NCBI GenBank assembly: GCA_053919585.1
Contig: CM132808.1
Length of the DNA: 64,000 nt
Direction: 5' to 3' (one strand)
Origin: Euprymna scolopes
Taxonomy: Eukaryota
The translations under genes and the position numbers were made by a program. The notes below the pieces were generated by a model that did not search any database, had not been told where the DNA came from, and worked only from the letters and a program-made list of their open reading frames with translations. Position 1 is the stretch's first letter; every line of letters begins with the position of its first letter. Below, piece by piece: positions 1-51,646 of the stretch.

Positions 1-3000
1 TCAGTATCACATTAAGTATTACATACAGTATTACATAAGTATTACATTCAGTATTACATGTAGTATTACATGCAGTATTACATTCAGTATTACATTCAGT
101 ATTACATACAGTATTACATACAGTATTACATTCAGTATTGCATGCAGTATTACATACAGTATTATATTCAGTATTACATGCAGTATTACATGCAGTATAA
201 TAAAGTATAACATGCAGTATTACATTCGGTATTACATCCAGTATTACGTACAGTATTACATGCAGTACTACATACAGTATTACATTCAGTATTACATTCA
301 ATATTGCATACAGTATAACATACAGTATTACATTCAGTATTACATACAGTAGTACATTCAGTATTACATTCAGTATTATATACAGTCTTACATACAGCAT
401 TACATGCAGAATTACATGCATTATTACATACAGTATTACATGCAGCATTACATGCAATATTACATACAGTATTACATACAGTATTACATTCAGTATTACA
501 TGCAGTATTACATACAGTATTACATGCTATATTAAATGCAGGATTACATACAGTATTACATTCAGTATTACATGCAGTATGACATACTGTATTACATACA
601 GTATTACATGCAGTATTACATTCAGTATAACATACAGTATTACATACAGTATTACATTCAGTATTACATGTAGTATTACATGCAGTATTACATTCAGTAT
701 ATTACAGTATTACATTCAGTATTACATGCAGTATTACATACAGTATTACATACAGTATTACATTCAGTATCACATACAGTATTACATTCAGCATTATATG
801 CAGTATTACATGCAGTATTACATTCAGTATTACATTCAGTATTACATGCAGTATTACATACAGTATTACATTCAGTATTACATGCAGCATTACATTCAGT
901 ATTACATACAGTATTACATACAGCATTACATTTGGTATTACATGCAGCATTACATGCAATATTACATACAGTATTACATACAGTATTACATTCAATATTA
1001 TATGCAGTATTACATACAGTATTACATTCAGTATTACATGAAGCATTACATGCAGTATTACATTCAGTATTACATGCAGTATTTCATACAGTATTACATA
1101 CAGTATTACATTCAGTATTGCATGCAGTATTACATACAGTATTACATTCAGTATTACATGCAGTATTACATGCAGTATAATACAGTATAACATGCAGTAT
1201 TACATTCGGCATTACATGCAGTATTACATACAGTATTACATGCAGTACTACATACAGTATTACATTCAGAATTACATACAGTATTACATACATTATTAAA
1301 TACAGGATTACATACAGTATTACATTCAGTATTACATGCAGTATTACATTCAGTATCACATTCAGTATTACATACAGTATTACATAAGTATTACATTCAG
1401 TATTACATGTAGTATTACATGCAGTATTACATTCAGTATTACATTCAGTATTACATACAGTATTACATACAGTATTACATTCAGTATTGCATGCAGTATT
1501 ACATACAGTATTATATTCAGTATTACATGCAGTATTACATGCAGTATAATACAGTATAACATGCAGTATTACATTCGGTATTACATGCAGTATTACATAC
1601 AGTATTACATGCAGTACTACATACAGTATTACATTCAGTATTACATTCAATACTGCATACAGTATAACATACAGTATTACATTCAGTATTACATACAGTA
1701 GTACATTCAGTATTACATTCAGTATTATATACAGTCTTACATAAAGCATTACATGCAGAATTACATGCAGTATTACATACAGTATTACATACAGTATTAC
1801 ATTCAGCATCACATACAGTATTACATTCAGCATTATATGCAGTATTACATGCAGTATTACATTCAGTATTACATGCAGTATGACATTCAGTGTTACATGC
1901 AGTATTACATACAGTATTACATACAGTATTACATTCAGTATTACATGCAGTATTACATTCAGTATTACATACAGTATTACATACAGTATTATATGCAGTA
2001 TTACATACAGTATTACATTCAGTATTACATTCAGTATTATATGCAGTATTACATTCAGTATTACATTCAGCATTACATACAGTATTACATTCAGAAGTAT
2101 ATTCAGTATAACATGCAGTATTTCATACAGTATTACATACAGTATTACATTCATTATTGCATGCAGTATTACATGCAGTATAATATAGTATAACATGCAG
2201 TATTACATTCGGTATTACATGCAGTATTACATACAGTATTACATGCAGTACTACATACAGTATTACATTCAGTATTACATACAGTATTACATACATTATT
2301 AAATACAGGATTACATACAGTATTACATTCAGTATTACATGCAGTATTACATACAGTATTACATACAGTATTACATTCAGTATTACATTCAGTATTACAT
2401 ACAGTATTACATACAGTATTACATTCAGTATTACATGTATTATTACATGCAGTATTACATTCAGTATTACATTCAGTATTACATACAGTATTACATACAG
2501 TATTACATTCAGTATTACATGTAGTATTACATGCAGTATTACATACAGTATTACATTCAGTATTACATGCAGTATTACATACATTATTACATACAGTATT
2601 ACATACAGTGTTACATTCAGTATCACATACAGTATTACATTCAGCATTATATGCAGTATTACATGCAGTATTACATTCAGTATTACATGCAGTATGACAT
2701 TCAGTATTACATGCAGTATTACATACAGTATTACATACAGTATTACATTCAGTATTACATGCAGTATTACATTCAGTATTACATTCAGTATTATATTCAG
2801 CATTACATTCAGTATTACATGCAGCATTACATACAGTATTACATTCAGTATTATATGCAGTATTACATACAGTATTACATTCAGTATTACATGCAGTATT
2901 ATATTCAGTATTACATTCAGTATTACATACAGTATTTCATTTAGCATTACATGCAGTATCGCATGCCGTATAACATGCAGTATTACATACAGTATTACAT

Positions 3001-3925
3001 ACAGTATTACATTCAGTATTACATGCAGTATTATATTCAGTATTACATTCAGTATTACATACAGTATTTCATTCAGCATTACATGCAGTATCGCATGCCG
3101 TATAACATGCAGTATTACATACAGTATTACATACAGTATTACATTCAGTATTACATGCAGTATTACATACCGTATTACATTCAGTATTACATGCAGCATT
3201 ACATTCAGTATTACATTCAATATTATATGCAGTATTACATACAGTATTACATTCAGTATTACATGCAGTATTACATTCAGTATTACATGCAGTATTACAT
3301 ACAGTATTACATACAGTATTACATACAGTATTACATTCAGTATTACATTCAGTATTACATGCAGTATTACATACAGTATTACATACACTATTACATACAG
3401 TATTACATTCAGTATTACATGCAGTATTACATACAGTATTACATTCAGTATAATACAGTATTACATGCAGCATTACATGCAGTATTACATTCAGTATAAT
3501 ACAGTATTACATGCAGTATTACATGTAGTATTACATGCAGTATAATACAGTATTACATACAGTATTACATGCAGTATTACATACAGTATTACATACAGTA
3601 TTACATACAGTATTACATTCAGTATTACATTCAGTATTACATACAGTATTATATGCAGTATTACATGCAGCATTACATGCAGTATTACATACAGTATTAC
3701 ATGCATTATAATACAGTATTACATGCATTATAATACATTATTACATGTAGTATTACATACAGTATTACATTAAGTATTACATTCAATATTATATGCAGTA
3801 TTACATACAGTATTACATGCAGTATAATATAGTATTACATGCAGTATAATACAGTATTACATGCATTATAATACATTATTACATGTAGTATTACATACAG
3901 TATTACATTCAGTATTACATACAAT
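1..3925. repeat. 12-bp satellite (CAGTATTACAT[A/T/G])n with higher-order structure; continues off the left edge
   Basis: Hundreds of tandem 12-mers with one variable position, plus occasional 10-bp variants (cagtataata). Blocks recur, e.g. the segment at 31-213 recurs at 1380-1562. Confidence 0.98.
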
Positions 3926-4048: not shown

Positions 4049-4843
4049 GTGAGTGTTGTTTTTTTGTAGCTGTTTATGGATAACAATGTTTCATATACCT
4101 CTCAATAAAACAAAATACATGTTTTAATCGAATCTAAGTCAGAAATCATAACAGCCTAATTAAATCGTGTTTAATGCCCGTAGCTCTTTTCATTACTTAA
4201 ACTTTTATCCGTAATCATATCCATGGAAGGGGCTATGTTCTCACCAGTGATCAAAATCTCACAATAGTACAAGGAAAAGAATAACGTTTAAAGAAAACGT
4301 CATTTATCAAAATGTTGATGTCTCCTTCTTTTCTGCTAGAGAGGGAGGACAGTCCAGACTACGGACATAAGGAGAAGTTTGCTTCTAAAATTTGCATTCC
4401 ATCCTAAATTATACTTAACGACTGCTCCTAAACTTCTAACGAAATGGCCTACCTCTGTCTTTGACTTCTATTGACATCACCTCGGCTTCTGACTATGATG
4501 GTTGAGGTGGCATTTAACTGCGTACTTGCTGACGCGATGATCCCAGTTCCCAGTGTACGTGTTAACATTCGCTTGTGACTCTAAATCATCAAATAAATGC
4601 TATCAAATGTACTCAGTATTATTAATAGTAGGAATAACAAGACTTTTGAGCCATACTGAAAACTTTCTAAATGAATCTTAGAATAAGTAAACAAATGCAT
4701 GTTTATATTTGATGATAAGGCTTTCAGACGACCGCGCATTAAATGCAACTGTCTTTATTGCCTATATTTATCAAATTTTCAACTTTCTTTAATATTTTTC
4801 TGGGTTGTCGCCATTTTATGTGCGAAATAATGAGATTGAACTC

Positions 4844-5192
4844 TGAAGTGTTCCTGGTTTAGGACAACAAAATTAAAGAAATAAAAAAAAAGAATTCGTC
4901 TTTGCAAGCCAACAACCGCCGCGTTTGAGATCACCATTGTCACCAACCTTCGTCTGTCCGCTTTTTCCCCCGACCTAACCTGTCAACTCCTTTTATACAT
5001 GTCTCCCGCGTGATTTCCCATGATTGCGCGTGACTTCCACCAGAGCACACCTTTTAAAACTATGGGCGCCATCTTGATTTCTCTCTCTCTTTCGCCCAAC
5101 CTCACCCGACACACACGCGGTAAGACTTTTGTTCGTTTCATCTGTTTTTCCCTTTCGTTTTCTCTTTTTCTTTCTGCTAATTTTAAGCAACA
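4844..5192 (-). repeat. 3' LTR of element A
   Basis: Runs tgaagtgttcc...ttaagcaaca and is highly similar to 10624-10968. A purine-rich PPT-like tract is adjacent on the minus strand (agagattaggaaggca). Confidence 0.9.
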
Positions 5193-6215
5193 TGCCTTCC
5201 TAATCTCTGGATCACATTTCATAATCCCTGATCTACTGTGGCAGTCGTCGTTCCCTACTTGGTCTCTGAAGTGTCTCGCCATCATCTCGCTGCACATCGC
5301 TTTCCACCGTTTCATTTTCCACTGGCCTGATATCAAGAATATGCCTCGATACTCCACAATGTTGTTGCTAGTATTATTCCCGGTTATGCGCCCTCTGCTC
5401 AACTATTTGGTACATCACCGAGTTTGATGGCCCCTGTTGTCTCCGTCTCCCTGCTTTCTGGCTCAATCCTATGATGCCTCTAGGAGTATATGAATATTGA
5501 CAGGTGTGGAACTGTCCCTTGCTCTTGCCCCTATCTAGGCGAAATGTTGTACCAATAAACCGCTTGCTCAGGCGAGGCGTTCCCTCTCTCTGCCACTGCC
5601 TTTATTGCTCGGTGTTTTTTTTCTACAATCCCGTTGCCACAGGGTCTATAAGCAGCTCTAAAGAATTGATGGACATTCCATTTCTTTAGTACATCCGCAA
5701 CTGCTGCCAATCTAAAGCAGTACCATTGTCGGTTAGATGCTCCTCCACCAACACTACGTCAAGGGCTGCTGCTGTGTTTCACCTCGCAGCCTTTTTCATA
5801 GGGCAAATCGCTCGGGGCCACAGTCGATCATTGTCATGTTAAGCCCACCCTTGTAATGGGTGACATCAACTGAGAGTCTTTCCCAGGTCCCAGTCACACC
5901 TAGTTCTCCAGCTTTATGCGCCCTTGAAGCAGGGTCAATTGTCTGACACTTGTCACAAGTCCTAACCACTTGCTTCACTTGTCCTTTGGGACACTCGGAT
6001 CAACTTTTCTCACCAGGTGCAATGTCCTCTCTACTCCCATATGATGCAGATAATGCAACTCTCGAAACCCAGAGCTATCCAGATGAGTCACTGCAGCAAT
6101 ATGGTCTTTTGTTGGCACAAGCCAGCTTCTTCTCACTCTTTTGAGAGCATCCGCTTTGTTCTTCTCAGAGGCAATGATTACGCACGGCTTCAAAGAAAAC
6201 TCCTGCATCAGCTCA

Positions 6216-8581
6216 AACAAGATCGATGATGAGGGGAGGTTCTGTCATGATTTCTCCATTGCTTATGACCTAACTCAGATTGTTCACGAATCCACCCGGG
6301 TGCCCGACAATGACGGCCAGTATGCGAGTCTACTAGACCTTTTTCTCACAACTTGCCCTGAACTATGTTCAGTTTCTGTTCTGTCTCCTCTTGGATCTTC
6401 CGACCACTCTGTTGTATCAATTAATATAAAAATGAAATGTAATATGTCCCCAGACGTACCTATCCATTATACAGTATATCGATACACTAAGGCTGACTTG
6501 GATAGCTTCTGTACATTTATATCGGATCTACCTCTGCGTTCCATGTTTAAAAAGGATGTGTCCTCTATAGTATCAGACCTGACGGAATGGTTAATTGTAG
6601 GTATAGACCGTTTCATACCATCGAAAATGTTCCAGCAAAAACCTAACAGCCAGCCATGGTTCTCTCCAGAATGTTCTGCTGCCACTGCGCACAGAAATCA
6701 CTTTTTCCACTGCTTCCGACGTAATAAATGTATGGAAACTAAAGCCGCTTTTAGGACTGCCAGCAACCATTGTAAGAAAGTAATAAAGAACGCAAGAGAG
6801 GTGTATGCTCAGTCCGTCAAGTCCAAAGTAGCTGAGCAGCGGCTTGGTTCCCACCAGTTTTGGCAAATGGCAAACAGAACAGAAGCATGTGCTCTATCCC
6901 AACTATCATCAATGGACCTGAGATAATCTCATCAGCATCAGACAAAGCCAAACTCTTTGCCAAGAACTTTGCAGCCAATTTTACCCTTTGCCAAACTAAT
7001 AAAAAACCTTGGTTCCAGTAAAGCAACAGGCCCTGACGGTATTCCAATTATAGTACTCAAAAAACTTCAATGAGAACTAGCACCCATACTTACAAAACTG
7101 TTTAAACGTTGTCTTAAGGAGAATTGCTTCCCATCACCCTGGAAAATCTCATTAGTATGCCCTGTATCTAAGAATTCAGGTGATCGCTCATCTGTGCGTC
7201 ATGAGTAAGTTGCTGGAATCTGTGTTAAATACAGAAGCAATCAACCATCTCAACAAAAATAACCTTCTTAGTGACACTCAATATGGTTTCCGTTCTGCTA
7301 GATCTACAGCAGATGTGCTTACAGTCATATCTCATAGGATTAGCAAATCTCTCGACGGAGGCAACCTTTCTAGGGCAATTACTCTTGACATATCAAATGC
7401 CTTTGATAGGGTATGACATAAAGATTTACTTCACAAAATCTCCAGCTATGGTATAGCTGGAAAAGTCTTCTCAATTATTAAATCATTTCTTTCTGATTTC
7501 TGAGGTTCATAAGTGTAATAGTTGAGGGGCAAAAATCAGAAGCCCACAGTATTAATGCTGGAGCCCCTCAGGAGTCCATTCTGGGCCCAACTCTTTTCCT
7601 GATCTACAATGATAATCTTCCAAATCACATCCTTACATCATTTGTAGACATTCATGCTGATGACACTACCATTTATGGTAGCACATCTAAGACAGTAAAC
7701 GACCAAGTTCTCTCCGATTCTCTCTCCTCTGATCTTGAGCACGTAGTACAATGGGGAAAGGAGTGGCTGGTTACTTTTAATGCATCTAAAACCAAGCTTC
7801 TCTCTTTACATCATCAACATTCTGATCCACATCTGGCATCAATTGAAATGAATGTCTCTCGTTTTCAGGAGGCCTCAAGTTTTGACAAACTTCTGACCTT
7901 ACCGTTACTCCTGATCTTAAATGGAACACGTACATCAAATCTGTTGCCAAGGCCGCTGGAAAAATGGTGGGATCTTTCTATCGATCCAGTAGATATCTTA
8001 CTGCTGATGCAATTCTCTATCTATATAAGAGCCAGGTACGTCCAAGGATGGAATACTGTTGCTACATCTAGGCAGGAGCTGCTAGAAAGAACTTGCACTT
8101 CCTTTATAGAGTTCAAAATAGACTTCGTAGTCTCGTAGGAGATGTCCTTTTCTCTTCCTTGCAACCTCTATCTCACAGAAGAGATGTTGCGAGTTTGTCT
8201 CTGATGTATCGTTATTTTCATGGAAAGTGTTCGACTGAGCTTCAGTCTATGGTCCCCCCTCGCCAAACTTTTACAAGAAACACTATCAATAATTCCCCCC
8301 ACTCTTTATCTGTGCCTAAACCTTAACGTAGATTCCATGATCAAAGCTTCTTTCTTAGAACTGCACGCCTGTGGAATTGTCTTCCGTTTTCCTGCTCTCC
8401 GGCTGACTATAATATGGTTGTCTTCAAGTCTAACGTAAACAAGTTCTTGATGAGCCGTTCCATATAAGTTAACAAATTTACCGAATTACTATATTGTCCA
8501 ATTTCTACTGTACACTCTTTAACCCTTATCCTCGAGTGGCCTCTTGGCCTTGATAATTGGGTGATGCCTGTGTAAAAAAAA
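6216..8581 (+). mobile_element. 5'-truncated CR1-group LINE (APE C-terminal part + RT) inserted in the RNase H/integrase region of element A
   Basis: Motifs SLLDLFLTTCP, PLGSSDH, QYGFRSARSTAD, HADDTT, LQPLSHRRDVASL and an A-rich tail. Flanked by the 6-bp duplication AGCTCA (6210-6215 and 8582-8587). Removing it restores element A pol (..GMLAELMQEFSL..). Confidence 0.93.
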
Positions 8582-10611
8582 AGCTCAGCCAGCATCCCGA
8601 GCTTGCGATTCACTAGCATCTCTGCTGTCCCTTTGTCCTTATCCTTTTTTCGTGTGAAATCATCGATTTCAGCCAAACAAACACAGTGGCAGACTCTGTT
8701 TTCACACAGATGTTGTGTAGTCCCCATTTTAAGGCCAGATTCACTCCTTTGGTAACTGCATCCAATTCTGCTACATTGATGTGGCTAGCATCACTTTTCT
8801 TCCATAGCCAGGCCGCATCCTCTGCAACTACTCCACCCACTTCCAAGACAACCCTTTTTTCAATACTGCTTGCATCACACCACACGACTCCATCCAGTGT
8901 TCGCGGCACGTTCCACATTCCCCGAACTGGGTCTTACTTTTCCACTTCTTTCAGGACCTCTTCAATCAAAGCAGTCGTTCTTCCTCCCACTCTATCATCC
9001 CATCTTCTACCTTCGGCATACCTCTTGATGTAGCTGCATGCTGGTCTAAGCCAACCGGCAATGGGGTAATGCCCAATCAGCCTGCCGAATATCGAAAAAA
9101 GCTCCCGCTTGTTAAGCTCTTCTTTCATTTATAGGATCTAGTTTCCCATTCGAAATTCCAGACCACCCGACGCATTTCGTCTTTGCTTTAGTACCAAAGC
9201 CGCTCTCTCATTCAATTCTTCCGGTGCCTTGGCGACCAACCCAGACTTCTTCAAGTGAACCACGACCAATGAACCAATGAAACTCTGGTGACTACAGTCA
9301 CCAGAGTTTCATTCACGAGGATGTCGTCGATATATGAACTCACGGCGCCATTTCCCTTCCCCATTTTTTCTAGAATCTTCCTTAGAATGGTTGACATGAT
9401 TTTGGATGCCGAGTTCAGCCCAAACCCCACCCTCGTAAAACAGTAGGTTCTGCCTTTATATCAGACCAACTGGTACTTCCAGAGTTTCGTGGCAGTGCGG
9501 AGTTGCAAATAGGCAGATTTTAGATCGACCAACTTAGAGGCACCGTTCATTTGCCTCCATTCTCTGATGGTCTCAATGCATATATCTATAACGCCCCCCT
9601 CAGTATGGCACTCGACGTGTCGGTCCAATTCTCGGAAATCTAATACTGGTCTGACCTTTCCTTTTGTTGGCTGCAGAACGGCCATTAATGGCAAGATGCC
9701 CGATTCGACGTCATTTGTCTACGGTAACAGTATTCCCTCCTCGATCCATCTGTCCATTTCTGGTTCAAAATCCTTTCTTGCTCCTCCTTTGGACGAGTTA
9801 TCGTAACATGCCACCCTTTTTGTTAACGTAGCTGGTTCATTCTTCCATGCCCACTCCACTGTCCACTGATTTTCATCGAATTCCACTCTAAAATCCGCGC
9901 CATTATTCCCAAGTCGGGGCAGCTGCTGGCGCTTCGGCTCCCCTTTGACAGTTTCCCGGACTCTTACAGTTAACTGCCATGTGACCACTCTGATTACACC
10001 TGTATCCCACGGTCCTTACCAAGAACTTCCTCTAGTTTCTCTGCAGATGCGGCCCCCACATTCAAAACATGTGTCTTGCGGTCTCGGGCGGCTTTTGCTC
10101 TTACCCTTCCATGCTGGTGCCACCGTTCCTTAGGCCCCAGAGGGTTGGGTGTTCACTAATATTCTTGCAGTTGGGAGCAGATCGGTCACCTCCAAAGTCT
10201 CGATGCCTGGAACCTGCTGCAGTTTCTTAGAAATCCCATCCGGGAACTCGGTAACGAATGCCATCATTGCTACGTGATTTGCAACCTGTCTCCGAATTCC
10301 TGCCAGTTCCACCAATCGTTCGACTTAATTTGCATACACATCGACGTCCACCTCTTCTCTTTTAATTTGTTGTACGCCTCAAACGGTCCTTCCGCAAATG
10401 CCTGGATCAATCTAGCTATGATCATCTCAGCGTCCTCCTGTTCACGGGAGCTCAGCTCCAAATATAGGGCTAGTGCGTCACCCTCCAGGAACAACGGTGT
10501 CACTGTGGTAACGTTGCCGATCTTTTGGAGCTTTGCCACTAGGTCCACTAAGGCACCACATCGCCTTCGCCACTGAACGGCTTTATCATGTTGTTCAGGC
10601 CGGTAGCCATC

Positions 10612-10623
10612 GCCGAAATAGCT
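10612..10623 (-). promoter_or_regulatory. Primer-binding site of element A, complementary to tRNA-Phe nt 1-12
   Basis: The plus strand reads GCCGAAATAGCT directly abutting the TG of the 5' LTR. The identical 12-mer occupies the same position in element C. Confidence 0.85.
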
Positions 10624-10968
10624 TGAAGTGTTCCTGATTTAGGACAACAAAATTAAAGAAATAAAAAAAAGAATTCGTCTTTGCAAGCCAACAACCGCCG
10701 AGTTTGAGATCACCACTGTCACCAACCTTCGTCTGTCTGCTTCTTTTCCTCGACCTAACCTGTCAACTCCTTTTATACATGCCCCCCGCGTGATTTCGCG
10801 TGACTTCCACCAGAGCACACCTTTTAAAACTATGGGCGCCATCTTGATTTCTCTCTCTCTTTCGCCCAACCTCACCCGACACACACGCGGTAAGACCTTT
10901 GTTCGTTTGATCTGGGAGGGGGGGGGTCATTTCTTTTTCTCCTTTCCTCCTGTTAACTTTAAACAACA
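10624..10968 (-). repeat. 5' LTR of element A
   Basis: Copy of 4844-5192 with a diverged U3 end. Contains CAAGATGGCG and TATAAAAG on the minus strand. Confidence 0.9.
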
Positions 10969-11105: not shown

Positions 11106-12605
11106 GTAAGTATTTATTCCTTTTCCTTTTTCATTTCACAAAATCTCATGATAATAATTCAAATACAACATAACCCTACTCGGCAGAAAACCCCGTGACG
11201 CCAACACCGGTGGTTATCACGGTAAGTGGCAGTGAATAACTTGAGTGGATTGAAAAGCCTGAGGAGGGATAACATTATCTGGAGCTCGACTGGAAGCGAT
11301 AGAGAATATTAGTGGATTATTGAGGAGGCTTCCTGTCACTCATATTACAGGGGAAAATAGTAGCCATGACCCGCGAAGAATCACTAGTGACAATTGACAG
11401 GGGAATACGCTGTGAATTGCAAAGGAGAATTGTAGAGATATGATGATATTTACCATTAGCCAAACCCCAGAGAAAAACCTCAGATAAACCCGTTACTTTT
11501 TATCAACGAAATATCACTTATAACGACTAACGTAATAATAATAATGCTAATATGTATAATAATACGCTAATCAGTTTATTTTCGTATGTTTCGTATATCA
11601 CTTTTCGGTATCATTAAAAATTAGATCGTCCAATCAAGGATAGTGATTGGTGATTAATATGGTGTCGTTAATGTAGACAATTCTAAATAATTTTTTCTGC
11701 AGATTACTGGGTATCACCACTCTATCGTTATACAAAAGAACATCGTCGCAAAGTGAAAAAAACTTCCGGTATGTTAGGATCTTTATTTTAGATGTTATTC
11801 TTTGTGGTTTCTTAAAACTATCTTTTAGAGCCCATTGTTTTATGTCTGCAAGTGTGACTGCGAGCTATCTTATAGTATATGCGATCACATCTTTATTTCG
11901 CAGTTGTGATGATTGAATTTTCGAATACTTTGGTGTTCTTTGGAACAAGTCAGGATAACCTGTCGACATTACATATTTTTAGAAGACAGGTACTCACTTT
12001 TGAAATTGTAGTTTAATAATTTTTTACTCAAATATCAACACGGGTTCGTTATCCGTCTGTAACGTAAACCTTCAAAACTTATGTCTAATGTCGCTTTCTC
12101 AATCTAGCAGTGTTGTTATTCCGCAGGTTGTAATGATCGAGATGCATGCACAATGGTTTTCTTTGTTCTGGTTGGTAGTATGCTCTGATACCATGAAAGC
12201 TAGTGTCGCTTACTCATTGCGCTAGATCTTGTGATTATGAGAGAGAGAGAGAGAGGGAGAGAGAGAGAAAGACGAAAGTGACTCACTTGACATTCTGGTG
12301 TCCAACTCCAGGTTCTATCTTTCTTAAGAAGTTCATTGAGAAGGGCCCCTAAATTATGCATATTTTAATAAATATTTGGTAAAACTTTGTCAAACCAAGA
12401 AAGCCTTGTAGAGCTTGAACATTATCCGTGGGAGAGGTATGTCAGTATTCGTCTGTCGACTGTCTGTATTGATTATATGCCCCAAATATTTTTATTTCTT
12501 AAAGAAAAAAATCACATTTCGCTTCTATAACGTAAAACCCGAATTCTTGAAGTTTATCGAAGACGCACAAAATATGCTTCCTGTGCTCAATCACAGATTT
12601 GATGT

Positions 12606-13261
12606 TATATTAGTATATATTGTTAAATATTATATTAGTATGTGTCGTTAAATATGATATTAGTATGTGTCGTCAAATATTATATTAGTATGTATCATAA
12701 AATATTATCTTAGTGTGTATCGTTAAATATTATATTAGTATGTATCATTAAATATTATATTAATATGTGTCGTCAAATATTATATTAGTATATATCGTTA
12801 AATATTATATTAGTGTGTATCGTTAAATAATATATTAGTATATACCGTCAAATGTTATATTAGTATGTATCGTCAAATATTATATTAGTATGTGTCGTTA
12901 AATATTATATTAGTATGTGTCGTCAAATATTATGTTAGTATGTATCGTTAGATATTATATTAGTGTGTATCGTTAAATATTATATTAGTATGTATCGTCA
13001 AATGTTATATTAGTATGTACCGTCAAATATTATATTAGTATGTATCGTTAAATATTATATTAGTATGTATCTTTAAATATTATATTAGTATGTGCCGTCA
13101 AATATTATATTAGTATGTATCGTTAGATATTATATTAGTATGTGTCGTTAAATATTATATTAGTATGTACCGTGAAATATTATGTTAGGATGTATCGTCA
13201 AATATTAGTATGTATCGTCAATTATTAGTACGTATCGTCAAATATTTATTAGTATATATCG

Positions 13262-13314
<53 letters not shown>

Positions 13315-13341
13315 TATGTATCGTTAAATATTATATTAGTA
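12606..13341. repeat. 25-bp minisatellite (aaatattatattagtatgtatcgtt)n, left part, with embedded (TA)n
   Basis: Directly visible tandem units; the array resumes at 16104. Confidence 0.95.
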
Positions 13342-13359
13342 ATTGTCAAATATCCAATA

Positions 13360-44988: not shown

Positions 44989-45971
44989 ATCAGGTTGACA
45001 AGAAAGTTTTTTGCAGTTTTTAACTTTTAAATTTTGATGACCATATCTCGACTCAAACATAGCACCATCAGAATCAACACTTTTGCAAACGCAAAAAAGG
45101 TGCATTTATGCCAGTAAGGTAAAAATCCTGCGTTCTGTTGGCAATGAAATCTTTGAAAGCGTTTTTGACATCGCTTAGGTTTTTTAAGTATTTCCCACAC
45201 AGGAATTGTCGAGATGTTTGAAAAAGTGGTAGTCGTTAGATGGAAAGTCTGTTGAGTATGGGAGACGAGGCAGTTTCGTAGCCAATTCGTTAAACTTCTA
45301 CAGAGTGAGTTAAGCAACGGTCGGGCATTGTCCTGGGGGAGAATTTTTTTTTCTAATACTGGGTGTTTTTGTCGAAGTTTCATTCATTTATTGACAGTAC
45401 TTCTCCGCCATAATGGTTTCGCCTGCATTAAAAAAACTGTAACGGATGAGATCGGTTGCAGACTACCAAACAGTCAGCCTGACCTGACCTCTTTTGGTTC
45501 AACTCTGACCTCAGGAAGTGTCGTATAGCTTTGTCGGCGTCTAGTCACTGAGCATCGCCGGTTGTCGTAAATACTCCATTTTGTTCGCAAGTCACAACCT
45601 GATCGAAAAACGGGTCGCTCTTGTTGCAGAAAAGAAGGGAAGATGACACTTCATAACAACATTTCTGTTAGTCGTTAAACTCGTGAGGCACCCATTTATC
45701 GTATTTCTTTTTGTCTTGTGCCAAACGCTTCGTTGATATCAGCAGCTGTTCGGGCTAGCTTGAATTGAAATAAGAAAATTGTGCGAATTTGCTTTTTTCC
45801 ATCTTGTATTTAAACGTTCTGAAAAGAAGACATATATTTTAAAACGCTTGTAATTTAAACGATTAGAGCGAAAAGGCTCTTTAAAATGATATATAAATTA
45901 AACGTATTTGAAAATACATCATTTGAACTAAAAAATATACATTCCGTAAGAACTTCCTCATATACCTAATA
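44989..45971 (-). mobile_element. Degenerate mariner element (second subfamily)
   Basis: Minus-strand LRQKHPVL..QDNARP and worn TIR-like ends. Confidence 0.7.
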
Positions 45972-46397
45972 TGTCGGCAACAAGTGTACTCAATAAAAGA
46001 ATGGAAAAATTCTCTCTCCGTTATTTTTTTGTTTATTCTGCAAAAGAAATTCGACAACTATCATATCCAGGTTTAAAGATACCTTGGACACACATTTAGA
46101 TTGTATGTGAGGGTAAATACTCCCATCTCTCTCTTTCCGTGTCTTCTTGCACTATGTTTGGCACGTAAATTTGATCGGGTTGGATTAATATCCGTAAACT
46201 TTCAAATTCCGAATATTCCATTTAACAAATATGTTAAAGTAATTTCTACCACGCTTGACACAACACCCGAAAATATCACATGACCGAAACCAGTTTTACG
46301 TCATAACTAGATAATATCCTGTTTTACCTGTACATAAATACGAATAGCTACTTTGTTTTCTGATCAGATTCAAACTAGGAGTAATGGAAAATCTTCA

Positions 46398-46686
46398 AAC
46401 CTTTAAAACTAGTAGTACCATTTCATACGTAGACTATAACTTAATAAATCCTAAGCCTAACTAATAAAACAGCAATTATAACAAACTATTTTTAACACAA
46501 CATATTTCAATAAAACAGCAATTATTATGAACTATTAAGCAATTACGAATAATTTTTATCCACTTTAGCACAACTTTCTCGTCAAAAATCGTTATACACA
46601 ATGGTGGCTTAATCTTAACTTCTCTACAATCTCATCCAAATTTACGATCGGTTTAAACGTTTTAAATGTTTGGGGTTTTTTTATAC
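46398..46686 (+). repeat. 289-bp direct repeat, left copy, abutting element C
   Basis: Matches 51358-51646 with about 5 substitutions by eye. Confidence 0.93.
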
Positions 46687-46970
46687 TGTAAGAGTATCTT
46701 GTGTAGTTTCCGACGTGTAGGAGACGGGGAGTCTCGTCGTGGGCGACGAAGCGTTTCACTGAAGAACCACGGCAACACACAGCGAACCAACAAACAATGA
46801 CAGCCACGGCGCGAAGGTAATTAACAAAGCTCAGCTGACTGCACGAATAGAAATGGAACCCAACGGTCACTAACGGAACCCAACGGTCACTGTACTGATC
46901 GCCACGAACGTCAGAACCCGACTGCCTCGCACCTCCAATGGACCGATTTTTATTCCTCAAGATGGCCTAG

Positions 46971-49900
46971 CTAATTTGCATCCCCGCGAGATCTCGCGCG
47001 ATCCTGCGAGATTCCGTCTCTAATAAAAGCAGGCAGGCGCCATCTTGGAACTCTTTCTTCCGCTGCCCCGACCACACGATCAGCAACCACCCCGCACGCC
47101 AGGCACACACGGACCCTCTTGCGCCGAGGGCTACGGTTAGTCTCACACTCCCCCCTGGTCTCCAGATCACATACGTGACACGGCGGACGTGGCCGTTTGA
47201 TTCGAGCACTCCTGCGGAGGGTTATTGCCGGGACTTCCTCATCGGAGCTCTCAGAAGTGGCATCGGAAGCATCAGCATCAGCATTAGAGCTCGCAGTTGA
47301 ATCATCAGGTTCGTGGGGCACAGGTTGGATCCATCGCTCATCGTCGGATGACTCGCTCCTTCCACTGCTCGCAGTTGAGTCACCAGGTTCGTGGGGCACG
47401 GGTTGGATCCATCGCTCATCGTCGGATGACTCGCTACTTCTACTGCACGCCGATTTTTCAGCGCTTAGAGCGGGCCGGACATCCCTTACGTGGCGCGGAG
47501 TATCATCGACTAGTATGGCCTGTTCACTGATGACGCCGGTGACCCGCCCCCTCCAAAAGCTGCTGGTGCACCGGCCGCCGGGTGGCTTCACCCAGACGGT
47601 GTCTCCCACTTGGTACGTCCCCTGGGGTTCTCGTTGGTCGGGTAGACACACTTCAACGTCCTTGACGCGCACGTGGTAGTGATGAATCGCATCAGCGGGC
47701 GCACTGCCGCCAGTCACGGCGTCCTTAGGCGTTGTGTTGTATCTGTAAACCGCCTCCGCGATCGTACACTTCTTCCTGGCCGCGATCCTCTTCACGGTTC
47801 GGTGGCACCGCTCCGCTATGCCGTTGCCGCTCGGCACATACGCGCATCGATGTCGAAGGCGGATCCCCCAGTTGTCCATAAAATGCCTGAATTCCCTGCT
47901 GCAGAACGCCGTGTCGTTATCCGTGAGGATCTCGTCAGGCGGCCCCCTTTCGTAGAATATGGATTCCAATTCGTGGATGACACTGGTGGAATCCTGCCTC
48001 GCTAATTGGCGCCAAATCGCGAACCTCGTTGGCCCGCAGTCTATCAGCGTGAGGAAGTGTTGGCTGCCGTAGTGGGTTATATCCATACCCAACCGACTCC
48101 AGGTCGCGTCCACTCTCAGCTGTCCTTTCCGCCATCTGGCTGGGGAAGGGTCGATGGACTGGCACGTTTGGCACTCCCTGACCACTGCTCTTACTGCGCT
48201 TTTTGGTATTGATGGTCTAGCCAACTTCACAAAGTAGTAGGTCCGTTGTACTCCGGGGTGCCCACTGTCGTGATGTATCTTCCTGATTTCGTTCTCCTCG
48301 ACGGAGGCAGCACACAGAGGCAATGGCTTAGCTTCTTTCTTCATAGCCTCATACCATCTCCGTGGTACCCGAGTGAGCTTGTCGGCGAGGTTGTAGTCCG
48401 AGGTGACGAGCACTACGTCTACGGACAGGTTGTACTTTGTCACCAGTTTTTTCACAGTCTCCAGCCTCCGTCTTATCAGCATTTCGCTGGCTGCCTTGGT
48501 GCGTGCCCTGGCCTTGCTCGTGAGTGTGTCCGACACCCAGTGGTGCACGCAAAGTGAGTCAGTGTGCACACGCAGTTTCTTCACTTCCCATTGAAGTGCC
48601 AGGTTAATGCCCTTTATTACAGCGTCGAGTTCTGCCAGGTTGATATGGGCAGCATCATTCGCCGGTCGCAGCCAGCAGGCATCTTCAGCTACGGCCCCAT
48701 CTTTCTCCAAAACTACACCGATCGCTAGAGAACTTGCGTCCACCCACACGCTCAGTTCGTCTCCCTGCACACACCAGTCCCCTGTGACGGGGTCATTCTT
48801 TTTCACACTAGCGATGGTCTCATTTAACATTCGAACCAATAGTTCGTCGGTTATCTCATCGTCCCAGCCTTTGGTGACCGCATTTGCCCTCCTTTTTATG
48901 ACGCCTGTCGCCGCACGAACCCATCCGCATACTGGAAGGTGCCCCACAAGTTTCCAGCACAGGGAGAACACGGCACGTCTTGTGTAAACGTCGGGTACGT
49001 CGGGAACTGCGGTTCCACGCCTTCACTTCAGGATCCCTCGCTCCTCTTGAACGCTCAAGCCCAATACGCGGGCGCCATCCTCAAGCCGCTCAGAGTCCTT
49101 GCAGTTTAGACCAAACTCGGCAAGTTTGGATCTTACGCGCGAAGATGACACGATATCTTCGTTCACATATATATCGTCAATGTACGCCGATGTTCCCTTT
49201 CTGATCCATTCTTCTTGTGACAACACGGCATTGACGATAGCCTTCATTATCTGGGGTGCTACGTTTAGCCCAAATCCGAGTCGCGTAAGACAGTATCTCT
49301 TCCCGGAAAACATCACTGTCTGGAAAGGCCACATCGCCTCGCCGATCCGGACCTGCAAGTATGCTTTTCTCAAGTCCAGTAGGGACACATTGGACCCCTG
49401 CCGGCGCCACTCTCGCAGCTTGCTGGCACAGACGTCGGCGTCCGCTGTGAACGCATCAACGTGCGCATTCAACTCGCAGTAGTCCATTACCGGCCTCACC
49501 TTTGACTTGTAAGGTTGGGCAACTGCCATCAGCGGTATCAGGCCCTTGGGGGGTCCAAGTTTGTCGTAAGGGTATGGAATCAGCCAACCGTTCTTAATCC
49601 ATTCACGGAGCTCGCTTTCGTATGCAGGCCTTATCTGGTCGGGCATACGGTACTCTGCCACTTTGTTTTGTAGTTTGGCCGGTTCCTTGTCTTCTGACCA
49701 CCTCCAAGTGGCGGTCCACTCCTTCTGTTGGTCGTCGAACTCCGCACTGAAGTCCGGCTGGTCGACTCTTAGTGCTGCGCACACCGGGAGCCTATCCTGA
49801 AATTCTACAACGCCAGCGCGCGTTATGCGCACGCCGCCCAGGGCTTTGATGGCATCGTAGCCTAGCAACAGGTCGAAACTCAGCGGCTTTTCGCGTGTCA

Positions 49901-50183
49901 CCAGCGCTTCGACGTTGGCCGAGTTTCTAGTTCTTGTGCGAATGTGTACCACACCCACGCCGCAACACATTCGTATTTTTCCAGTAATGGTAGTTATCCT
50001 GACGTTCTTATTTTTCCACGCCCGACAGAAGTCCGCACACACTATGGTGCGGGAGCAACCGGAATCAAGGAGGGCTGAACATAACGTGTCAATAACTCGG
50101 ACCTGAATGACAGGGAGCGCCTTGTTTATTTTCTGTTCGGGGAAGAGGTCGGCACTGGCACCTTGTCCCCGTCCCCGTTTCCC
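46971..50183 (-). pseudogene. pol: pol of element C (protease-RT-RNase H-integrase), one internal TGA at 49023-49025
   Basis: LLDSGCSRT protease; LTRLGFGLNVAP and YIDD RT; WVDASS/HINLAEL/HTDS/NLAD RNase H; HH-CC, GMDITH, LTDND, GIAER integrase. ORFs 49023-50042 and 46971-48971 are in the same frame. Confidence 0.92.
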
Positions 50184-50869
50184 GCACAGTCTCGGGCCAT
50201 GTGCCCAGTCTTGTTACAGCGGTAGCAGCGAACAGCCGTCGACCGCCTTCTACAATTTCTTGCCATGTGGCCCCGCCCGTTGCATCTGTAGCAGATGACA
50301 TCACCTTGCGGGCTGGGTCCCTGAGACGGTCCTTCGCCACTTGGTGGGGCCTGAGCGACGGCGACTACCGGTTCCTGCACCGTCGAGTCATCCTTCATTA
50401 TTGTCCTGGCTCTGTCCACTAGGTCACTCAGCGGTAGTGAGGACATGGTAGAGGTTGCTCGCAGGAGCTGCTTTGCTCCAGCGGGGAGTCCTGACAGGAA
50501 TTTCTAGGCTAGGGCCCTCTCGGAAAGACCGCCGAACAACACCGTCAGCTTCTTAAGCTCGGCGAGATACACGTCCACAGTTTCGCCCAAGCGTATAGAC
50601 CTCGTCTCAAACTGCTCCCATGCAGTGGCGGGGTCAGTGGCGAAGGCCCTGTACAACGCCGCCTTGATACTCGAGTAGTCACACTTCTCCTCAGCGCTGA
50701 GTTGCTGATATACAGCGAAGGCCCCGCCGGTCAGCCGCAGAGGAATCACGCGCTCGATATTTTTCACGCCGGACAACTGACAATGTAACTCGACCTTCTC
50801 AACCCAGCTGAGTACCGGGTCGGATCCGTCGAATTCCGGTATCAATTTTAGATCGAACTTATCCGCCAT
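50126..50869 (-). pseudogene. gag: gag of element C with two CCHC zinc knuckles, one internal TAG at 50504-50506
   Basis: MADKFDLKLIPEFDG...CYRCNGRGHMARNC..CYRCNKTGHMARDC. The two ORF pieces are in frame. Confidence 0.92.
50177..50183 (-). promoter_or_regulatory. -1 ribosomal frameshift heptamer G GGA AAC (gag-pol)
   Basis: XXXYYYZ in the gag frame with an open -1 frame into the protease and a GC-rich stem downstream. The same heptamer occurs in A (9951-9957) and B (21457-21463). Confidence 0.85.
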
Positions 50870-50902: not shown

Positions 50903-50914
50903 GCCGAAATAGCT
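50903..50914 (-). promoter_or_regulatory. Primer-binding site of element C, complementary to tRNA-Phe nt 1-12
   Basis: Plus strand GCCGAAATAGCT abutting the 5' LTR TG at 50915. Confidence 0.85.
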
Positions 50915-51357
50915 TGTAAGAGTATCTTGTGTAGTTTCCGACGTGTAGGAGACGGGGAGTCTCGTCGTGGGCGACGAAGCGTTTCACTGAAGAACCACGG
51001 CAACACACAGCGAACCAACAAACAATGACAGCCACGGCGCGAAGGTAATTAACAAAGCTCAGCTGACTGCACGAATAGAAACGGAACCCAACGGTCACTA
51101 ACGGAACCCAACGGTCACTGTACTGATCGCCACGAACGTCAGAACCCGACTGCCTCGCACCTCCAATGGACCGATTTTTATTCCTCAAGATGGCCTAGCT
51201 AATTTGCATCCCCGCGAGATCTCGCGCGATCCTGCGAGATTCCGTCTCTAATAAAAGCAGGCAGGCGCCATCTTGGAACTCTTTCTTCCGCTGCCCCGAC
51301 CACACGATCAGCAACCACCCCGCACGCCAGGCACACACGGCTACGGTTAGTCTCACA

Positions 51358-51646
51358 AACCTTTTAAACTAGTAGTACCATTTCATACGTAGACTATAAC
51401 TTAATAAATCCTGAGCCTTACTAATAAAACAGCAATTATAACAAACTATTTTTAACACAACATATTTCAATAAAACAGCAATTATTATGAACTATTAAGC
51501 AATTACGAATAATTTTTATCCACTTTAACACAACTTTCTCGTCAAAAATCGTTATACACAATGGTGGCTTAATCTTAACTTCTCTACAATCTCATCCAAA
51601 TTTACGATCGGTTTAAACGTTTTAAATGTTTGGGTTTTTTTTATAC
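51358..51646 (+). repeat. 289-bp direct repeat, right copy
   Basis: Matches 46398-46686. Confidence 0.93.

Follow-up and report, generated by a model that had tools for sequence, protein, structure and literature searches.

LTR retrotransposons with a primer-binding site that matches the 5' end of tRNA-Phe

How does an LTR retrotransposon begin reverse transcription when the site directly behind its 5' LTR matches not the tail of a tRNA but its first twelve nucleotides? This question is raised by two elements, here called A and C, in a 64,000-nucleotide stretch of DNA from Euprymna scolopes (GCA_053919585.1, contig CM132808.1), which we refer to as the window. The original prediction, made from the sequence alone, was that the 12-mer following the 5' LTR in both elements is the complement of nt 1-12 of tRNA-Phe, and that minus-strand synthesis is primed by a short 5' fragment of this tRNA cut in the D stem. 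We find that the observation is confirmed and is much broader than first seen, and that the interpretation is supported, although only at the level of comparative sequence evidence, as the primer molecule itself and the way in which it is cut remain inferred.

The two elements were defined by self-BLAST of the window and by direct reading of their ends (Table 1). The LTRs of C have TG..CA ends and are 98-99.8% identical apart from a ~15-nt indel, while those of A are 92.7% identical. The 5' LTR of C ends ..CTCTTACA and in both elements the base after the terminal CA of the 5' LTR is the first base of AGCTATTTCGGC. A and C share no detectable DNA similarity in LTR or gag, and the 12-mer occurs only at these two sites in the window when up to 1 mismatch is allowed (0.11 expected). 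Two candidate degenerate sites, at 45527 and 45744, were rejected on reading the sequence. One correction to the original prediction is needed, in that the LTR of C is 441 nt rather than ~730 nt, the outer 291 nt on each side being a flanking direct duplication that abuts both LTR ends and that other copies of the C family lack. Self-priming from the element's own RNA 5' end, as in Tf1, was considered, as an 11-12-nt primer-binding site (PBS) flush with the LTR is the Tf1 pattern (PMC7175516, PMC10085805). However, no copy of GCCGAAATAGCT with up to 3 mismatches lies on the element strand in either pair of LTRs, so that this reading is refuted at sequence level for A and C.

Table 1. Features of the window; elements A and C lie on the minus strand.
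Feature	Position	Strand	Description
PBS of element C	50903..50914	-	AGCTATTTCGGC on the element strand, complement of tRNA-Phe nt 1-12
5' LTR of element C	50915..51355	-	441 nt, TGAGAC...CTTACA; matches other C-family copies
3' LTR of element C	46687..47112	-	~15-nt indel relative to the 5' LTR
gag of element C	50126..50869	-	ATG at 50869, 33 nt after the PBS; N-terminal motif KFDLKLIPEFDG; two CCHC zinc knuckles; split by a frameshift in this copy
pol of element C	46971..50042	-	RT (RVT_1), DUF7047, RNase H (RVT_3 type), integrase zinc finger and core; one break near 49000 in this copy; C-terminus runs into the 3' LTR
Flanking duplication	51356..51646		291 bp, copy next to the 5' LTR of C
Flanking duplication	46396..46686		291 bp, copy next to the 3' LTR of C
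PBS of element A	10612..10623	-	the identical 12-mer; gag ATG at 10610-10608, one base after the PBS
5' LTR of element A	10624..10914	-	ends ..CACTTCA
3' LTR of element A	4844..5144	-	preceded by a purine-rich tract at about 5145-5180
pol of element A	5414..9895	-	degenerate, 35-50% identical to C pol (tblastn); interrupted at about 6000-8600 by an unrelated nested repeat
Third pol copy	18588..21321	-	diverged, same lineage, 37-41% identical to C pol; no LTR or PBS found
Unrelated repeat family	about 6000-8600 (inside element A); 51855-54304; 36262-36981; 63548-63993		copies 78-94% identical; one carries a 261-codon frame at 6141-6926
Satellite	about 80-3400		12-bp period, about 250 units; spuriously yields the long ORFs at 579-3545
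Tandem arrays	12598-13354; 16103-16521		two related arrays, 25-bp period, about 3 kb apart

The host's own tRNA-Phe genes were then examined. The pattern GCCGAAATAGCTCAG occurs about 695 times in this 5.9-Gb genome, mostly in tandem arrays, and ARAGORN calls these as tRNA-Phe(GAA). There are about 650-700 such genes, around 100.09-105.5 Mb on sequence C18 and around 101.7 Mb on sequence C28 of the assembly (219-bp period on C28). Nearly all of them carry GAA at positions 4-6, with minor variants at these acceptor positions (AAC, GAG, GAC). The gene at 1501-1573 of one such locus (L011) begins GCCGAAATAGCTCAGTTGGGAGAGCG, so the PBS is the exact complement of nt 1-12 and the shared block ends at G1. 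A tRNA-Phe-like sequence with the same first 19 nt but a diverged body was also seen on the minus strand of a further locus (L002, about 1450-1515), which was not called as a tRNA and may be a pseudogene or a tRNA-derived repeat.

The motif proved to be the property of a lineage rather than of two elements. The junction ACA+AGCTATTTCGGC occurs 3,214 times in the genome, against 0 for the reversed-pattern control. Thirty sampled sites plus A and C fall into 13 clusters by BLAST of either the upstream 300 nt or the downstream 900 nt, and thus represent at least 13 families unrelated at DNA level, with similarity stopping exactly at both ends of the 12-mer; self-priming would instead predict family-specific co-variation of PBS and LTR. 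Their gag N-termini are nevertheless homologous (motif ..IPxF.G....W..K..L..KL....IPL.L.G.A...Y), and the gag ATG is always very close to the PBS, 1-35 nt downstream. The elements are compact (4.3-4.9 kb), with a gag containing CCHC knuckles and a pol ordered PR-RT-DUF7047-RNase H-IN. Pfam searches gave zf-CCHC, RVT_1, DUF7047, RVT_3, Integrase_H2C2 and rve, whereas the models typical of gypsy RNase H (RT_RNaseH), BEL/Pao (Peptidase_A17) and Copia (RVT_2) gave no hit, and the nearest solved structures are retroviral integrases and foamy-virus RT. The lineage is identified here only by DUF7047 and by relatives in Trichinellida, Crustacea and this genome; Odin retrotransposons, which the paper on them reports only from sea anemones, were rejected as its identity. 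A first-look search finds over 13,000 DUF7047 candidates and about 55,000 candidates for C pol; searching with the C pol returned only the C family, in which many copies have uninterrupted 1,080-codon frames at 95-97% identity. Poly-A RNA-seq contigs, from runs labelled mollusc or invertebrate metagenome, cover the element and run across the PBS, but gave no transcription start site.

To ask whether the site is kept in other hosts, loci were fetched by protein identity, that is without regard to the PBS, homologues of the C RNase H-IN frame being found in Trichuris, Trichinella, decapods and a barnacle. Two elements from the barnacle Amphibalanus carry AGCTATTTCGGC, one after an LTR ending ACTACA and with the target-site duplication (TSD) GGCAA (L045), the other after GACTACA and with the TSD GTATT (L202). 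Two elements from Trichuris suis carry AGCTATCGAGGC, after ACTACA with the TSD CAGAA (L044) and after AGTACA with the TSD AGTTG (L201). The decapod elements carry AGCTATCTAGGC, after GCTTCA in Macrobrachium, where no TSD was found (L043), and after ATTACA with the TSD ATGTT in Petrolisthes (L047). Of two metagenomic contigs, that from ENA has AGCTATTCCGGC after CCAATA with the TSD TATAC (L048), and that from JGI has AGCTATTTCGGC after GGTTTTA, with no TSD found (L203); the 5' LTR of the latter ends in three tandem ~55-nt repeats (150-330) just before the PBS. Two further loci, from Trichinella (L046) and Portunus (L200), had no recoverable LTR or PBS. Eight of eight relatives in which the 5' LTR end could be found therefore carry AGCTATNNNGGC starting at the base after the LTR, and six of them have exact 5-bp TSDs. 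The Macrobrachium element, the 3' LTR of which lacks the terminal CA, is flanked by a ~314-bp duplication (4826-5139 and 9445-9759; 97.5% identical) much as C is by its 291-bp duplication, and two such cases in two phyla suggest an occasional aberrant, widely staggered insertion route. The plus-strand primer tract ..ATCAGGGGGGAG directly before the TG of the 3' LTR is conserved from barnacle to decapods, with close variants in Trichuris (..ATCAGGGAGGAG in L044 and ..ATCAGGGGGGCA in L201) and in the second barnacle element L202 (..ATCAGGGAGGAG), whereas element A of the window has a different, A-rich tract.

Among these relatives only the bases opposite tRNA positions 4-6 differ (TTC in the barnacle and JGI elements, CGA in T. 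suis, CTA in the decapods and TCC in the ENA contig). In a pol tree the decapod elements group with the trichinellid ones and the barnacle elements with those of this genome, yet the PBS variant is uniform within each host taxon. A metagenome scan for GCCTMGATAGCTCAGTTGG, followed by ARAGORN, found eukaryote-type tRNA-Phe(GAA) genes corresponding to both the decapod and the Trichuris variants. One (L080) begins GCCTAGATAGCT, has a body almost identical to this host's tRNA-Phe and a 3' acceptor strand TCTGGGC, while the other (L154) begins GCCTCGATAGCT and has the 3' strand TCGAGGC. Both variant sites are thus complements of genuine metazoan-type tRNA-Phe 5' ends, and the variation sits where acceptor stems vary by compensatory change. 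A GAA-type tRNA would pair poorly with these variants (-10.4 against about -20 kcal/mol). As no tRNA genes were found in the fetched Trichuris, decapod and barnacle loci, and the ORFs on L080 and L154, only short exons of an SLC12 and a P-type ATPase gene, do not reveal their hosts, tracking of the host tRNA is strongly suggested but not proven. It remains conceivable that another host RNA ending in GCCGAAAUAGCU-3' is the primer, the match to the tRNA being coincidental or reflecting a tRNA-derived RNA such as a SINE transcript, and the tRNA-Phe-like copy at L002 and the polymorphic sites described below could be taken in its favour. We consider this very unlikely, as such an RNA would have to be conserved from mollusc to barnacle and to vary in nematodes and decapods at exactly the three acceptor-stem positions that vary in real tRNA-Phe genes.

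What does the anatomy imply for mechanism? The 3' end of U5 is by construction the first base copied from the primer, and with LTR ends fixed by TSDs the last base of the primer must pair with PBS base 1, making it a U in the context ...AGCU-3', which is tRNA-Phe U12. The 12-mer might instead bind tRNA-Phe for another purpose, such as packaging or control of the nearby gag start codon, with priming by some other means, but this appears improbable, as it starts at the first copied base in every element with TSD-verified ends and no alternative PBS was found, neither a TGG-type site nor a self-primer. The reading that we favour, and regard as likely although there is no biochemical evidence of any kind and no 12-nt tRNA-Phe fragment has been observed, is that minus-strand synthesis is primed by the 5'-terminal 12 nucleotides of cytoplasmic tRNA-Phe (G1 to U12). 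In this model the genomic RNA carries a 12-nt PBS immediately after U5, which pairs with the 5' strand of the acceptor stem, plus U8, A9 and the first three bases of the D stem. A 3'-OH is then created at U12, most probably through cleavage at the edge of the RNA:RNA duplex by the element's own RNase H, the trans equivalent of Tf1's cut between bases 11 and 12, and RT extends from U12 into U5. Plus-strand strong-stop synthesis would later copy the primer and stop at its natural 5' end, which would explain why conservation ends exactly at tRNA G1. Precedents exist for a short primer cut by RNase H (Tf1, PMC7175516) and for 5' tRNA fragments as primers (copia and others, PMC5371799, PMC6317226), but cleavage inside a D stem has no precedent known to us.

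Two other routes to the same primer end were weighed. The fragment could be made beforehand by a host nuclease and packaged as such, without cleavage of annealed full-length tRNA; 5' tRNA fragments are common small RNAs, and a scan of 150 nt on each side of the PBS in 15 representatives for 7-mers complementary to tRNA-Phe, as might hold a whole tRNA in the manner of Ty1/Ty3, gave only scattered chance hits, including a lone TGGTGCC in A. This seems unlikely, however, as the known classes of 5' fragment are generally longer than 12 nt and end in the D loop or later, and a fragment running past U12 would leave an unpaired 3' flap because the last bases of the LTR do not continue the complementarity. 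Alternatively, uncut tRNA-Phe could prime from an internal 2'-hydroxyl near U12, giving a branched RNA-DNA as in bacterial retrons. Nothing in the sequence excludes this and it would remove the need for a cut in the D stem, but it is a remote possibility, since no LTR element appears to be known to do this and it does not explain why conservation stops exactly at G1.

One observation does not fit neatly. Across the genome ACAAGCTATNNNGGC occurs 4,791 times (control 113), of which 3,214 are TTC and the rest are mainly the three single transitions TCC, CTC and TTT. The C family is almost all TTC, but in one young family (leader CATTTGG, about 630 copies) 100 copies split TTC 44, TCC 35 and CTC 19, while the adjacent 11-nt leader is only about 1% diverged. 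The two polymorphic Ts lie opposite tRNA A5 and A6, and the variant duplexes are weaker (-14.2 and -15.0 against -18.7 kcal/mol). Isodecoders do not explain these variants, as no tRNA-Phe gene with G5 exists in the assembly and only one has G6, whereas the more numerous GCCAACA isodecoder has no matching PBS among the variants listed. If the PBS were rewritten from the primer at each cycle, such mismatched variants should be lost quickly, which counts against the favoured model. Their near 1:1 ratio to TTC is what variant master copies yielding half primer-templated progeny would give, but subfamily structure or other causes are not excluded and the polymorphism remains unexplained.

Accounts of how LTR elements start reverse transcription list three primer types, namely a complete tRNA, a half-molecule cut in the anticodon stem and a self-primer (Neumann et al. 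2019, PMC6317226; see also PMC10886601). We found no description of a PBS complementary to tRNA nt 1-12, although subscription-only papers and Repbase notes lay outside the search and a prior description cannot be excluded. It is about as likely as not that the first 12 nt of tRNA-Phe, released in trans by the element's own RNase H, constitute a fourth class of minus-strand primer, used by a whole, very successful protostome lineage (mollusc, crustaceans, trichinellid nematodes) and invisible to standard PBS finders. Speculatively, the polymorphism opposite A5 and A6 could then be either a footprint of primer copying or an escape from silencing guided by 5' tRNA-Phe fragments, since the changes fall in what would be the seed of such a guide. 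Such a class would also raise the question of whether 5' tRNA fragments restrain such elements as 3' fragments do for mammalian ones (PMC7472051). Practically, the motif CA+AGCTATNNNGGC is a one-line diagnostic for the lineage.

With the canonical 3'-end priming of retroviruses and most Ty3/gypsy and BEL/Pao elements these elements share their overall anatomy, that is LTRs with TG..CA, a 5-bp TSD, a purine tract ending GGGGGGAG before the 3' LTR and a host tRNA as partner. A canonical PBS, however, begins TGG and pairs with the 3' 8-18 nt of the tRNA including CCA, whereas here the bases after the LTR are AGCTAT... in 32 sites of this genome and 8 elements elsewhere. Standard pipelines search only the former (for example the 12 nt at the tRNA 3' end in a 2026 survey of metazoan env-carrying elements, PMC13524379) and would report no PBS for this lineage.

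In half-tRNA priming, as used by copia, Ty5, 1731, Osser, Bianca and fungal Copia elements, a 5' portion of a host tRNA likewise supplies the primer, so that the tRNA must be cut, and the choice of primer is a trait of the lineage (PMC5371799, PMC6317226, PMC10886601). There the PBS pairs with the anticodon stem-loop region of tRNA-iMet (or Ile, Tyr, Asp) and the fragment is about 39 nt, and this mode is reported only in Copia-superfamily lineages (Kojima 2024, PMC10886601). Here complementarity is to nt 1-12 of tRNA-Phe and does not continue into nt 13 onward, the cut would fall in the D stem, and pol has the RT-RH-IN order rather than integrase before RT.

In Tf1/sushi self-priming a short PBS (11 against 12 nt) also lies directly after the CA of the LTR, and the primer is as long as the duplex and starts at the natural 5' end of an RNA. 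In Tf1 the element's RNase H cuts an RNA:RNA duplex between bases 11 and 12 (PMC7175516, PMC10085805), which is the most economical model here, proposed by analogy only. In Tf1, however, the primer is the 5' end of the element's own transcript and PBS and LTR co-vary, whereas here the partner is a host tRNA, the LTRs of A and C hold no complement with up to 3 mismatches, the PBS is identical across families with unrelated LTRs, and Pfam reported no chromodomain.
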